DNA from: Fonticula alba ATCC 38817
Taxonomy: Eukaryota; Protista; Nucleariida
Strand: one strand, 5' to 3'
Assembly (NCBI GenBank): GCA_000388065.2
Contig: KB932206.1
Length of the DNA: 64,000 nt
Position numbers and translations under genes: made by a program
Part shown: in pieces, positions 23,901-28,583 of the stretch
How the letters are laid out: each line of letters opens with the position of its first letter
How positions within the stretch are numbered: position 1 is the first letter of the stretch
The notes under the pieces: model-generated
Told to the model about the DNA's origin: nothing
Seen by the model: only the letters and a program-made list of their open reading frames with translations
The model's database searches: none

Positions 23901-25736
23901 CTGTGTCAGAGGGAGGGATGAAAAAAAAAAAGGGGGGGGGGGAGGGGAGGGGCGAGGGGAAGGGTAGATGGGGGCGGTGACGACGTGGCAGGTTGGAAAA
24001 ACGCACTCATTGCGAAGGCCCGCGGCCGAGAGCTGCGACAGTTCCCACCGATCGGGGGAGGACATGCGGTGCTGCAGTCGCTTGGTGGAGGTGGATCGGC
24101 TTGCCGTTTGGGCTCCGGAGAGGGGTGGCGAGGGGAGAGCCTGGTGATTGGAAAGGGTGGCGAAATGGGTGAGTTGATGAGATCGAGGATCAAAAAGGAG
24201 GCGCCAGCAGGACATGAGAAGGAGGAGCATGTGAGGGAGGACGTACTGAGGGGATGGGGCCCCAGAGATCGTGCTGATCCAGGGCGGCGGCCTTGCTTCC
24301 GCCAATCGGACGCTTGAATTGATCGTCATCATGGCTGTCATAGCGATCACGTCGGTCATATTCCCGGTCACGGTCGCGATGGTCGCGGCTGTCGCGGCGG
24401 TCGCGGCTGTCTCGATGGTGATGGCCTCGATCGTCGTGGCGGTCCTCACGGCGGTCATAGCCGCGGTCGTCGCGACGGTCGTCACGGCGATCATCGCGNN
24501 NNNNNNNNNNNNNNNNNNNNNNNNNNNNNNNNNNNNNNNNNNNNNNNNNNNNNNNNNNNNNNNNNNNNNNNNNNNNNNNNNNNNNNNNNNNNNNNNNNNN
24601 NNNNNNNNNNNNNNNNNNNNNNNNNNNNNNNNNNNNNNNNNNNNNNNNNNNNNNNNNNNNNNNNNNNNNNNNNNNNNNNNNNNNNNNNNNNNNNNNNNNN
24701 NNNNNNNNNNNNNNNNNNNNNNNNNNNNNNNNNNNNNNNNNNNNNNNNNNNNNNNNNNNNNNNNNNNNNNNNNNNNNNNNNNNNNNNNNNNNNNNNNNNN
24801 NNNNNNNNNNNNNNNNNNNNNNNNNNNNNNNNNNNNNNNNNNNNNNNNNNNNNNNNNNNNNNNNNNNNNNNNNNNNNNNNNNNNNNNNNNNNNNNNNNNN
24901 NNNNNNNNNNNNNNNNNNNNNNNNNNNNNNNNNNNNNNNNNNNNNNNNNNNNNNNNNNNNNNNNNNNNNNNNNNNNNNNNNNNNNNNNNNNNNNNNNNNN
25001 NNNNNNNNNNNNNNNNNNNNNNNNNNNNNNNNNNNNNNNNNNNNNNNNNNNNNNNNNNNNNNNNNNNNNNNNNNNNNNNNNNNNNNNNNNNNNNNNNNNN
25101 NNNNNNNNNNNNNNNNNNNNNNNNNACGGCGATCATACCCGCGGTCGTCGCGACGGTCATATCCGCGGTCGTCACGGCGATCATATCCGCGGTCGTCGCG
25201 ACGGTCGTCACGGCGATCATACCCACGATCCTCATGGCGATCATCCTGGCGGTCGTCACGACGATCGAGCTCTCGAGTATCGTGGCGACCATCTCGCGGA
25301 TTAGAAGGACCGGTGGTGCTCGAAGAGGAGGCCGGCTTGACCGGCGGGCCGGCCGAGGACTGGAACTGAATGATCAGGTCATACAAGTAATCGATGAAGT
25401 CGGGCTCAAAGTTGAACTCCTTGAGCTTCTCCAAAAAAGCCCCCCGGGTGGAGCTGGAGTTGTGAAACTTAATGAGCAGGCGGGCTGGGTGCCATCAGAG
25501 CCCAGTAGAAGGAGACGCGAGTCAGCAAGGGAACGGGCAGTTGACATGGCTAGAATATGTATCGGAAGAGAGAGGGAGAGAGAGAGAGAGAGGAGAAGGA
25601 AAGGACCCGGGCGAAACGTACCAACTTTCAGGTTGGCAATTTGCTCGCGGCCGCGGTCAGACAAAGCTTTGCAGATTGCGTGGCTCAGTTCGAGGCGTTG
25701 AAGCTGGCCAAGGGAGTGGCCTCCAGGAGCGGACAT
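20955..25736 (-). CDS. DHX8: DEAH-box spliceosomal helicase Prp22/DHX8, multi-exon, spans an N gap
   Basis: N-terminal PWI-like segment; [13 protein letters not shown]; [14 protein letters not shown]; QRESLPVF; GETGSGKST; TQPRRVAA; DEAH; SAT; [13 protein letters not shown]; QRKGRAGR; HA2 and OB-fold C-terminus ending WRLSKRR. Confidence 0.95.
24330..25290 (-). repeat. Coding tandem repeats ([11 protein letters not shown]-type units) in the DHX8 RD-rich domain, collapsed into a 627-N gap
   Basis: Near-identical GCGGTCGTCGCGACGGTCGTCACGGCGATCAT units on both sides of the gap at 24499-25125. Confidence 0.85.
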
Positions 25737-26309
25737 CTTCCAGTGGAGAGGCGATGGGGCCCGCAGGTGGCCTGAAAGGATGGCAAGGAGGGGCGGGAAC
25801 GAGGGAGAAGAAGGAGCAGGGGAAAGGAAGAGCAAGGAAGGGGGGAGGGCGCAAAAGGGGGAGGGGGGCAGGATGGAGGGGCTTTCTGGTGTCTGGCGCA
25901 ATGGGCCGGCTTCGGACAGGTCACCCTTTCTTGAGATGGACCTGACCGGGCCCGCATGATGGCCAAGAAACCGCCCGCACACCCCCAGTAGCACCTTCGT
26001 TGGGATTGAGATCGAAAAGCGCTCCCTATCGTCTACCGCCGACTGGAAACGATCCACACATTTACGGGTGTGAATGACCCGGAGCCCGGGACGCGGGGAC
26101 GCAGTGCCAGAGAGCCCGGGGCGCGGGGTGCGGGGTGCGGGGGGGGGGGGGGGGGGGGCGAGGAGGACAGAAACAGAGCACCCCGGGGGGTGGGGACCGC
26201 GGCGAAGGTTCGTTCTTGGGAAGACGAAAGACCAGTTCTGGGATGATGAAAATGAAAACGCAAGCGCCAAGTCTCATGTGTGCGTGATTCTCGTACATTC
26301 TGGAGAACA

Positions 26310-26910
26310 GTATTCCACAAAGGTGTAGTGGAATCCCCATGTAAACGATAGATGAAGCAACACGTGAGTGAATTGCCACACGTGTTACATCGTGGGAATG
26401 ATAGCATCCCAGAACAGCATTCCTCGGAGAGGAATGCGGGGCAGAACAACAGCCAGGAGGCCGCCGAGGCCGAGCGGCATAAACGCTCGACCGAGGACGG
26501 AGATACGCGAGTGGGCGGGCCCAGCCGCGGGGTTCTCAGTTCCAACCCCTGACCGAGCCCAAAGGTCAAAAAGGGGGACTCTCGTTGAGAGCCTCCTGAG
26601 AGCGAAAGCCTTAGCAGCTGTGTGTCGAAGAGTATACGGAAGTATAGCCGAAGCACCAGTTAGGCCGACGAACACCTGTTCTAAGGCTTCCTCTCGAACC
26701 CTTTTTAACATCCGAGTTCCTTTCTATTTTCGCTTGCCACTAACTCGTCTCAAGCCGAGTTACTGACTCATCTGGTAACAGACGACCGTGAACCGCTGGT
26801 TGGTATGTCCCCTCCTTCATGCCAAGAGGTTACTAACCAGGTGGCAGATCACACTGGTACCCTTCGTCAAGCCTCACTCACTTGACTTAGGCTTAACCCG
26901 TGTGAACCCT
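26310..26910 (+). ncRNA. Unidentified, densely structured RNA-like element (candidate ncRNA)
   Basis: At least 12 adjacent hairpins, three GNRA tetraloops and several G-U wobble pairs on the plus strand. No microsatellites and no credible ORF. Family not recognised; see findings. Confidence 0.45.
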
Positions 26911-28583
26911 GCTACAAAAGGACGGGCCTGGCGTGACCAAGCACCACGCCACCCTTGCCGCGCCCCAACCCGCGGTCCGGAGCCGAGACCAGTCATCCAT
27001 TGGGACGTGTGTGGGTGTGGGTGTGGGTGTGTGGGTGTGTGGGTGTGTTTGTCCGTCGGCGTGCTCCCCTTCTTCGCGCTGCCGCGGCTCCAAGGGCCGC
27101 GCAATGAAGACCCACCCTCCTCCGCCCCCGGCCCTTGCGAGCCCTGTGTCCCCGCAGGCGTTTCGGGTGGCGAGGGGCCGCGACCACCCAGATGGGCGTC
27201 CGTGGACCGGACGCGTCCCGCTGCGCATCCACATTACCGACCCAAGGGGCATTGCCAAGACGCGAGCCCCGGCCCACGCGCCACACTGCCCGGTTGCGGG
27301 GGGAGGGGGGGGCGGGGCTCCAATTATCCAGAAAGGGGATACTGTCCCGGGAGGAAGTGTCCCATGGAACGGCGGGAGACCCCGGCGTCCGGCGTCCCTC
27401 TGTGGGCTGACCCCCCCCCCCCCCCGCCTTGAGAGCAGGGGCCGGGGAGTGGGGGCGGGGGGCCAATCCAACACCCGGCTCCCACGAGGCCCGGGCAGTC
27501 CTGGGGCATTATTCTGGGGCGCCGCCCTGTCTGCCCGCGGGGGGCGGGGGGGGGGGGCTCAAGAGACAGCCCCTACAGATCGGTGCTCTCTCTGAGGCCG
27601 ATGCCGCTCCTGCCCACACTGGCTTTCCGCCAGCCCATGCAGGCTCCCTCGCACTGCCCCCGGCCATCCGGCCCCCCCCCCCCGCCCCCCAAGGCGGGCA
27701 AGGAAATCGTGCCCCAAAAATGCGGCATTCTTCGACGGGAGTGGGCCCGAGAGACGGTCGAGCGGCCCCGCAGGAACACACGCACACGCACACGCACACA
27801 CACGGCGCATTTACCTGAAGCCTCAGCAACGGGCGGATGTGCGGGCGAAGTTGAAATATTAAAGTAGGGGGATATATATATGTAACTGTTGATTTGCGAA
27901 CGGGATCCTGCTCAGGAAGAGCCCACCGAGCTTGTGTGACCGGCGGCCCGCTTTTGGGCGGCCGGATCTCGAATCCGACGTTCCTCTCCTTTCGCGGCTT
28001 GGGGGGTGGCATCAGGGGCCGGGGTCCTGCCCGAGAGAAACTGTTCGATTGCCACCATTCGCCTCCCGACCTGGAGCCGGAAAGCATACCACCCTTGAGA
28101 GGTGGAGGCTGCAGGCCACAACAGGGTATTCGGCCACCCGCCCCGATGTTGCGGCTGCCCGCTCACCCTGCGGGTGCCCTGGTCGGCTCGCTTGCCATCC
28201 CGGCCGAGACCTTTGCGGTGGGCCCGGTGCGCGAGAGGCGTGGCTTGGGGGGGGGGGGGGGGGGGGGAGGGTCCCTTGAAAATGATCTCACACACGCACA
28301 CGCACACGCAGACCCCACCCCCCCCCCCGTACACGAATGTTCGCTCCCTCTCTGTTTCCCTTCCCCGCCCCCCCCCCCCCACCGGCGCCCGAAGGTGATA
28401 CGGCGGAGATCCGATCCAACTGCTCAAAGCGTTGCGACACGAGCTTCCGGCCTCGACGGCGGATCCAACAAGCCGTTCCCTCCCCCCCCCACCCTTCTCC
28501 TCCCTCACGCCCCTCATCCCCCCCCCCCGCTTTCGCCGCGCGCGCCTGTCTGTCCCTGGGTCCGGTCCACTGGGGCGTGCGAT

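Follow-up and report, generated by a model that had tools for sequence, protein, structure and literature searches.

A hairpin-dense island upstream of a helicase gene in Fonticula alba is very probably the solo LTR of a young, Ty3/gypsy-linked retrotransposon family

In a 64,000-nucleotide stretch of contig KB932206.1 of Fonticula alba ATCC 38817 (C6:88014-152013; hereafter the window), a segment of about 600 nucleotides is crowded with short inverted repeats and lies upstream of a helicase gene, raising the question of whether the hairpins mark an RNA gene or have some other origin. An initial annotation, made from the letters of the window, proposed a novel structured RNA and named a telomerase RNA, an RNase P/MRP RNA, a ribozyme or intron relic, and a viral or mobile RNA insert among the options. 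The last of these is essentially right, as the element is a retrotransposon LTR. Taken as a whole, the evidence makes it very probable that positions 26324-26916 are a solo LTR of a young, probably mobile family linked to the Ty3/gypsy elements, and that the hairpins belong to the working sequence of that LTR. On this account the island is the commonplace remnant of a mobile element rather than a new RNA gene, and the main value of the analysis lies in that correction.

A dispersed repeat with LTR ends

A search of the genome (31,296,464 bases in 214 contigs) with window positions 26200-27000 returns at least 48 matches to the window LTR, dispersed over many contigs, about 25 of them at 97-100% identity and the remainder at 67-90%. 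The young copies all share the same exact limits, which define a plus-strand element of 593 bp in the window (Table 1) and replace the interval of 26310-26910 proposed initially. The first hairpin of the initial annotation (26312-18/26328-34) straddles the left edge at 26324 and reflects chance pairing between the flank and the LTR. Both the window copy and the other copies have termini of the form TG...CA (TGTAG at the left and CTACA at the right), and the terminal inverted repeats are only 5 bp long. The 17 nt at the 3′ end of the LTR have 29 exact occurrences in the genome, and the reversed control has none.

All eight complete copies are bordered by perfect 5-bp duplications and these differ from copy to copy, being AAAGG in the window and ATCTC, GGCAC, CGCGC, TCCCG, ACACC, GAGGG, and TCGCC elsewhere. 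The common limits, the TG...CA ends, and the distinct 5-bp duplication at each insertion identify the repeat as an LTR, and because a single LTR stands alone at this locus with its own duplication, the window copy is a solo LTR. Every LTR-defining feature that can be assessed on the window element is present, namely the ends, the duplication, and membership of a dispersed multi-copy family with common boundaries; a solo LTR carries neither a primer-binding site nor a polypurine tract.

Table 1. Features of the window LTR (window coordinates), followed by same-orientation LTR pairs elsewhere in the genome with the 5-bp duplication that each shares across a run of N
Feature	Position	Strand	Basis or remark
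Solo LTR, young LTR-retrotransposon family	26324-26916	+	Copies, ends, duplications, low divergence
Left target-site duplication copy, AAAGG	26319-26323		Read directly; identical to 26917-26921
Right target-site duplication copy, AAAGG	26917-26921		Read directly
Left terminal inverted repeat, TGTAG (integrase end)	26324-26328	+	Reverse complement of 26912-26916; conserved in copies
Right terminal inverted repeat, CTACA	26912-26916	+	Reverse complement of 26324-26328; conserved in copies
Putative U3 half (promoter/enhancer part)	26324-26609	+	Hairpins 26417-37, 26468-92, 26529-49, 26550-68, 26573-96
Most conserved LTR core	26550-26632	+	Invariant or near-invariant column blocks in alignments A1, A2, and A3, across subfamilies and the sister family
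Candidate self-primer and predicted transcript start, CTTAGCAGCTGT	26610-26621	+	One occurrence in window; nearly invariant in all LTR relatives
Putative R-U5 half (5′ leader of element RNA)	26610-26916	+	Hairpins 26633-46, 26741-62, 26771-82, 26796-840, 26861-91
C9 pair			CTGCC; 5842 N between, 6781 bp overall
C1 pair (L047)			AGGCA; 2115 N between
C3 pair	C3:3510102-3515447		TTACG; 5346 bp overall; right-hand duplication read by pattern search
L006 pair			CCTCC; 10 N between
L010 pair			CGCCG; 10 N between
L040 pair			ACGTT; 160 N between
L044 pair			CGCCC; 265 N between

The window LTR family is very young. Mean pairwise divergence among 22 young copies is 0.46%, with the window copy differing from its sister copies at only ~3 positions, and the two LTRs of the C9 pair are identical over 346 nt; the low divergence and the identical pair also suggest that the family is probably still mobile. 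Insertion next to tRNA genes is not seen, as 29 of the 30 loci with copies have no tRNA gene within ~1.5-2.5 kb and the remaining one has a tRNA gene ~750 bp away. A test for avoidance of open frames by the insertions gives medians of 266 v 377 codons (p = 0.03), a difference that carries little weight in GC-rich DNA in which open stretches are long everywhere.

Paired LTRs and the unassembled interior

Many of the young copies end at runs of N, and seven pairs of LTRs in the same orientation each share a single 5-bp duplication across such a run (Table 1). Because the duplication is shared across the assembly gap, several of these gapped pairs are full-length elements whose interior was never assembled. 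Pairs separated by short gaps (e.g. 10 N) may be one LTR split by the scaffolder; the two LTRs are identical in the L006 pair and have 5 differences over 398 positions in the L010 pair. The assembly contains no junction that joins a young LTR to its interior, every such junction falling in an N run, and a pattern search of the assembly for junctions between an LTR and a primer-binding site finds only one, of the sister type described below. With young LTRs bordering N runs, full-length elements appear to be systematically absent from the assembly. Repeats have been put at 0.36% of the F. alba genome, a very low value reported with a caveat about assembly gaps (bioRxiv 10.64898/2026.06.24.734286), and beyond this genome-wide repeat percentage we found no description of F. 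alba LTR families in searchable papers.

The family can be assigned through its relatives. Pfam searches of the genome find a handful of reverse transcriptase and integrase loci, and no copia-type reverse transcriptase, although the control for the copia search was also silent so that this blank means little. The two LTRs of an old element on the minus strand of C1 (L016) share 77% and 72% identity with the window LTR and flank an integrase remnant with ~64% protein identity to the integrase region of a sister element, L031. The sister LTR family, recognized by the 3′ end GTGAGAACCCTGCTACA of which there are 19 in the genome, can be aligned to the window LTR over the full length and has long conserved blocks in common with it. 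One of its copies (L031:3237-3852; G000:C1:155236-155851) is the 5′ LTR of a degenerate element with a 605-aa frame containing RVT_1, RT_RNaseH, and Integrase_H2C2 in Ty3/gypsy order. Since the L016 LTRs flank an integrase remnant, and the sister LTR heads an element with reverse transcriptase, RNase H, and integrase, we infer that the window LTR family is part of, or depends for its mobility on, an element of the Ty3/gypsy type. No chromodomain is detected by Pfam in the related polyproteins.

In comparison with the solo LTRs of Ty3/gypsy elements (Metaviridae), the window family is alike in its TG...CA ends, short inverted repeat, 5-bp duplication, and near-identical dispersed copies, as well as in having paired copies around an interior and relatives in which reverse transcriptase, RNase H, and integrase occur in that order. 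It differs in that the assembly contains no interior for the young family, such that the superfamily is assigned by way of older and sister copies.

Several sequences were considered as sources of the interior and rejected. The gag-pol contig C42 carries a different LTR of ~455 bp, the LTRs of the pol elements on C14 and C19 are also of other types, and contig C82 starts inside the LTR but continues into essentially single-copy DNA. C42 (L028; G000:C42:1-6502) is an unplaced 6.5-kb contig consisting almost wholly of one open Ty3/gypsy gag-pol frame, and it encodes the only intact polyprotein found (2037 aa, with RVT_1, RNase H, integrase zinc, and rve domains). Its ends carry the start and the end of the ~455-bp LTR, which is also present at at least 10 other loci.

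The competing account that survives best, though we regard it as improbable, is that the LTR comes from a non-autonomous element of the TRIM or LARD type, which has no gag-pol and relies on another Ty3/gypsy family for copying in trans, or that the interior belongs to another superfamily. Such an origin would agree with the lack of an assembled coding interior for the young family, with the variable gaps of the paired LTRs (2115 N in C1, 5842 N in C9, and 5346 bp overall in C3), and with the different LTR of the only intact gag-pol contig. However, an autonomous element would fit the spans of 5346 bp in C3 and 6781 bp in C9, an integrase remnant is found between older LTRs of this type, and the sister family has reverse transcriptase, RNase H, and integrase; a failure to assemble the interiors is moreover expected from many near-identical full-length copies.

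Two regions are transposon-rich nests (G000:C1:132000-172000 and G000:C19:124000-157000), where several diverged LTRs of the window family and its relatives occur with pol remnants and numerous N runs; the young solo LTRs elsewhere are by contrast isolated. The LTR of L031 contains a (CT)n microsatellite expansion, and the L031 element was later hit by an LTR of the window family in the opposite orientation (L031:9741-10000, continuing beyond). At G000:C19:151500-154800 (L051/L052), self-comparison reveals a long diverged tandem-repeat array, ~70% identical at many offsets, which adjoins nested LTR debris close to where the contig ends and may be of subtelomeric or centromeric nature.

Locus, LTR layout, and a candidate self-primer

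The neighbouring gene is a DEAH-box helicase gene transcribed on the minus strand from ~25292 down to ~20958, and its DEAD, Helicase_C, HA2, and OB_NTP_bind domains form an architecture consistent with the DHX8 call made initially. The LTR is ~1 kb upstream of this gene in a divergent intergenic region, pointing away from the helicase and towards an open frame that starts at 27894, to the right of the LTR, and has no Pfam match. The N-terminal part of the helicase frame (24300-25300, minus strand) has highly repetitive codons, seen on the plus strand as GTCGCGACGGTCGTCACGGCGATCAT-like units, and this repetitive stretch is interrupted by a 627-base N run (24499-25125) such that the gene model is incomplete.

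The most plausible history is that an LTR retrotransposon inserted ~1 kb upstream of the helicase gene with duplication of 5 bp of target (AAAGG), and that recombination between its two LTRs would later have removed the interior together with one LTR. In the LTR that remains, promoter palindromes probably occupy the U3 (left) half, and the R-U5 (right) half probably becomes a folded 5′ leader in the element RNA. Reverse transcription would most likely begin, as it does in Tf1, from pairing between the candidate self-primer and a primer-binding site immediately inside the element.

Co-option of the solo LTR as a promoter, an enhancer, or a source of non-coding transcripts for the helicase gene or the 27894 frame is compatible with the solo-LTR reading, and we consider it less probable than a non-autonomous origin and unlikely in its own right. 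The divergent intergenic position ~1 kb from the helicase start codon, the promoters that LTRs carry, and the presence of two CACGTG boxes speak for such a role, but a copy with ~3 differences from its sisters is too young to show selection at the locus.

Returning to the LTR itself, the U3 and R-U5 limits in Table 1 are those predicted if self-priming holds for the young family, with the two CACGTG palindromes (26361-66 and 26379-84) in the putative U3 half. The reason for placing the boundary at the candidate self-primer comes from L031, where the 12 nt made up of the last 3 LTR bases (ACA) and the first 9 internal bases (GCTGCTAAG) are the reverse complement of the window motif. With the copy of the motif in L031 itself the 12-nt duplex contains one G-U pair, and the minimum-energy fold of the L031 leader, taken between the motif and the site that follows the LTR, has this same 12-bp helix as its closing stem. 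In the older element L016 the site corresponding to the primer-binding site has decayed, yet where the 3′ LTR motif has changed from A to G, the site has a corresponding T-to-C change. The complementarity was examined on the sister element, the junction of the window family being unassembled, and it suggests Tf1-like self-priming in the window family.

In Tf1 reverse transcription is primed not by a tRNA but by the 5′ end of the RNA of the element itself, and the same has been proposed for Tj1 (PMC4600332); self-priming arrangements have been noted for several chromoviruses (PMC3601003). The resemblance to Tf1/Tf2 of Schizosaccharomyces pombe and Tj1 of S. japonicus (PMC4600332, and the papers by Levin that it cites) lies in the site after the 5′ LTR of the sister element, which is complementary to an LTR segment and not to a tRNA end, in the folding of the L031 leader such that segment and site pair, and in the invariance of the segment in the window LTR. 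The F. alba case departs from these systems in that the L031 duplex is 12 nt long and includes the last 3 LTR bases, with one instance in the assembly, and in that the related polyproteins are without a Pfam chromodomain and an insertion preference for pol II promoters is not established. Tf1-type elements could be usefully compared with a Ty3/gypsy lineage of this kind, young and possibly self-priming, in an organism closely related to the fungi.

Folding and conservation of the hairpins

The inverted repeats listed in the initial annotation are present in the element, including 26354-66/26379-91, 26417-25/26429-37, 26468-76/26484-92, 26529-34/26544-49, 26738-50/26753-65, 26796-805/26831-40, and 26861-71/26881-91, and GC content is lower inside (0.52-0.58) than outside (0.61-0.76), as also noted there. 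Folding of the exact element against dinucleotide shuffles, the check that had been recommended, gives z = -4.81 on the plus strand and -5.21 on the minus strand, with none of 100 shuffles as low. For the interval as first proposed (26310-26910) the values are -3.1 (plus) and -8.7 (minus) from 20 shuffles. Twelve other 593-nt segments of the window have z from -1.15 to +2.85, and because the element is far below these controls its hairpin density is real and unusual for window DNA; it is not strand-specific. Considered separately, the U3 half has z = -3.6 (plus) and -5.2 (minus), and the R-U5 half -2.5 (plus) and -2.7 (minus).

Copies whose identity to the window LTR is no more than 79-90% still have the hairpins. 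Two copies at 82-83% identity are even further below their shuffles (z = -7.2 and -9.5, plus strand), and the fold excess is kept generally at 80-90% identity; copies at 71-72% have no excess. When the 14 helices of the initial annotation are followed through ten diverged LTRs, 85% of cells are standard pairs, compared with 34-46% in slid controls in which the 3′ partner is shifted by 1-3 columns, in a set of few, related sequences from few independent lineages, on one of which the helices were defined. The R-U5 hairpins are 71-95% paired in the diverged copies. Changes on both sides of a pair account for 19 of 89 pairs in the helix pair count and are seen in the hairpins at 26417-37 (CCTC/GAGG against CTCT/CGAG), 26468-92, and 26579-91 (T-A against C-G). 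With RNAalifold 22 of 100 consensus pairs have double changes, and the covariation term is close to zero.

Wobble pairs differ between the two halves. Across copies, the left half (U3) has 27 G-U and 30 A-C combinations and the right half (R-U5) has 45 and 26, respectively. The G-U excess in R-U5 is a modest sign of a plus-strand RNA, and U3 is without strand bias. The preference for plus-strand transcription that had been read from the loops and wobbles is therefore retained in weak form for the right half only, the folding z being similar on both strands. This pattern would fit protein-binding DNA palindromes in U3, including the two CACGTG boxes, and RNA stem-loops in the leader.

The R-U5 leaders of retroviruses and LTR elements are structured, with TAR, the poly(A) hairpin, and the U5-IR stem-loop as examples. 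The window family is similar in having a series of local stem-loops in the putative transcribed part of the LTR that are kept in diverged copies with some compensatory changes; it is dissimilar in that U3 is at least as hairpin-dense as R-U5 and shows no strand bias. The hairpin density of U3 fits DNA palindromes recognized by proteins as well as it fits RNA structure. Conservation of LTR stems is discussed in PMC3601003. Since the hairpins outlast sequence divergence among the copies, and some of the changes in them are compensatory, they probably have a role for the retrotransposon, and the idea that they are functional and selected gains some support in this form, with compensatory evidence that is moderate and falls short of proof.

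A stronger proposal, which we put forward tentatively and consider somewhat more likely to be wrong than right, is that the whole LTR, including U3, is under selection for secondary structure and that the family uses Tf1-like self-priming. On that view the dense conserved stem-loops would be more than inherited sequence, acting as working parts in primer presentation, in packaging or dimerisation, or as promoter palindromes. Reverse transcription primed by a hairpin or by the element itself would also be placed in the nucleariid/Fonticula branch next to the fungi, in a family that is possibly still mobile.

The folding results bear directly on the proposal that the segment is a single-copy, plus-strand structured RNA gene, such as a telomerase RNA, an RNase P/MRP RNA, a ribozyme, or a group II intron relic. 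A folding energy far below that of shuffles, GNRA-type loops, and a compact series of hairpins are what such a gene would be expected to show, but the folding excess is the same on both strands and the segment matches no Rfam family, even with E up to 10. At gathering thresholds the only Rfam match in the whole window is a tRNA at 1369-1441, and with E up to 10 the region 25900-27300 gives four chance-level hits, none of them from telomerase RNA, RNase P/MRP, group II introns, ribozymes, or snRNAs. The suggestions of a group II domain V and of a TTAGGG-like telomerase template likewise have no support. The initial annotation had itself named many dispersed copies with target-site duplications as grounds for abandoning a unique RNA gene, and the genome has at least 48 occurrences with such duplications. 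Moreover, an unrelated LTR family of the same genome, the ~455-bp type of C42, reaches the same hairpin density, with z = -5.5 for a part of 404 nt (L025:1-404). We consequently give an RNA gene hardly any credence.

A DNA transposon or MITE, with which the ~600-bp length, short terminal inverted repeats, target duplication, and many copies would agree, is just as hard to credit, as the inverted ends are only 5 bp and of the retroviral TG...CA form, direct pairs share one duplication, and relatives occupy the LTR position around reverse transcriptase and integrase genes with a site resembling a primer-binding site beside the 5′ copy.

With the solo LTR as the preferred reading, hairpin density looks like a general property of young LTRs in this genome, and for this reason hairpin-rich islands attract attention. 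The hairpin-rich, lower-GC islands of ~600 bp here are LTRs, and they should be masked before searches for RNA genes.

Just to the left of the LTR, a SNORD46-like C/D-box match lies at 26236-26305 on the plus strand; it has a GATGATGA box and no clear D box, scores 15.6 bits against a threshold of 40 (E = 4.5), and is probably due to chance. The flanks also contain a poly-G run of ~24 bases at 26137-26160 and a (GTGTGG)n run at 27000-27050, both typical of the intergenic DNA of the window, and the element itself has neither, in agreement with its initial description as free of microsatellites.
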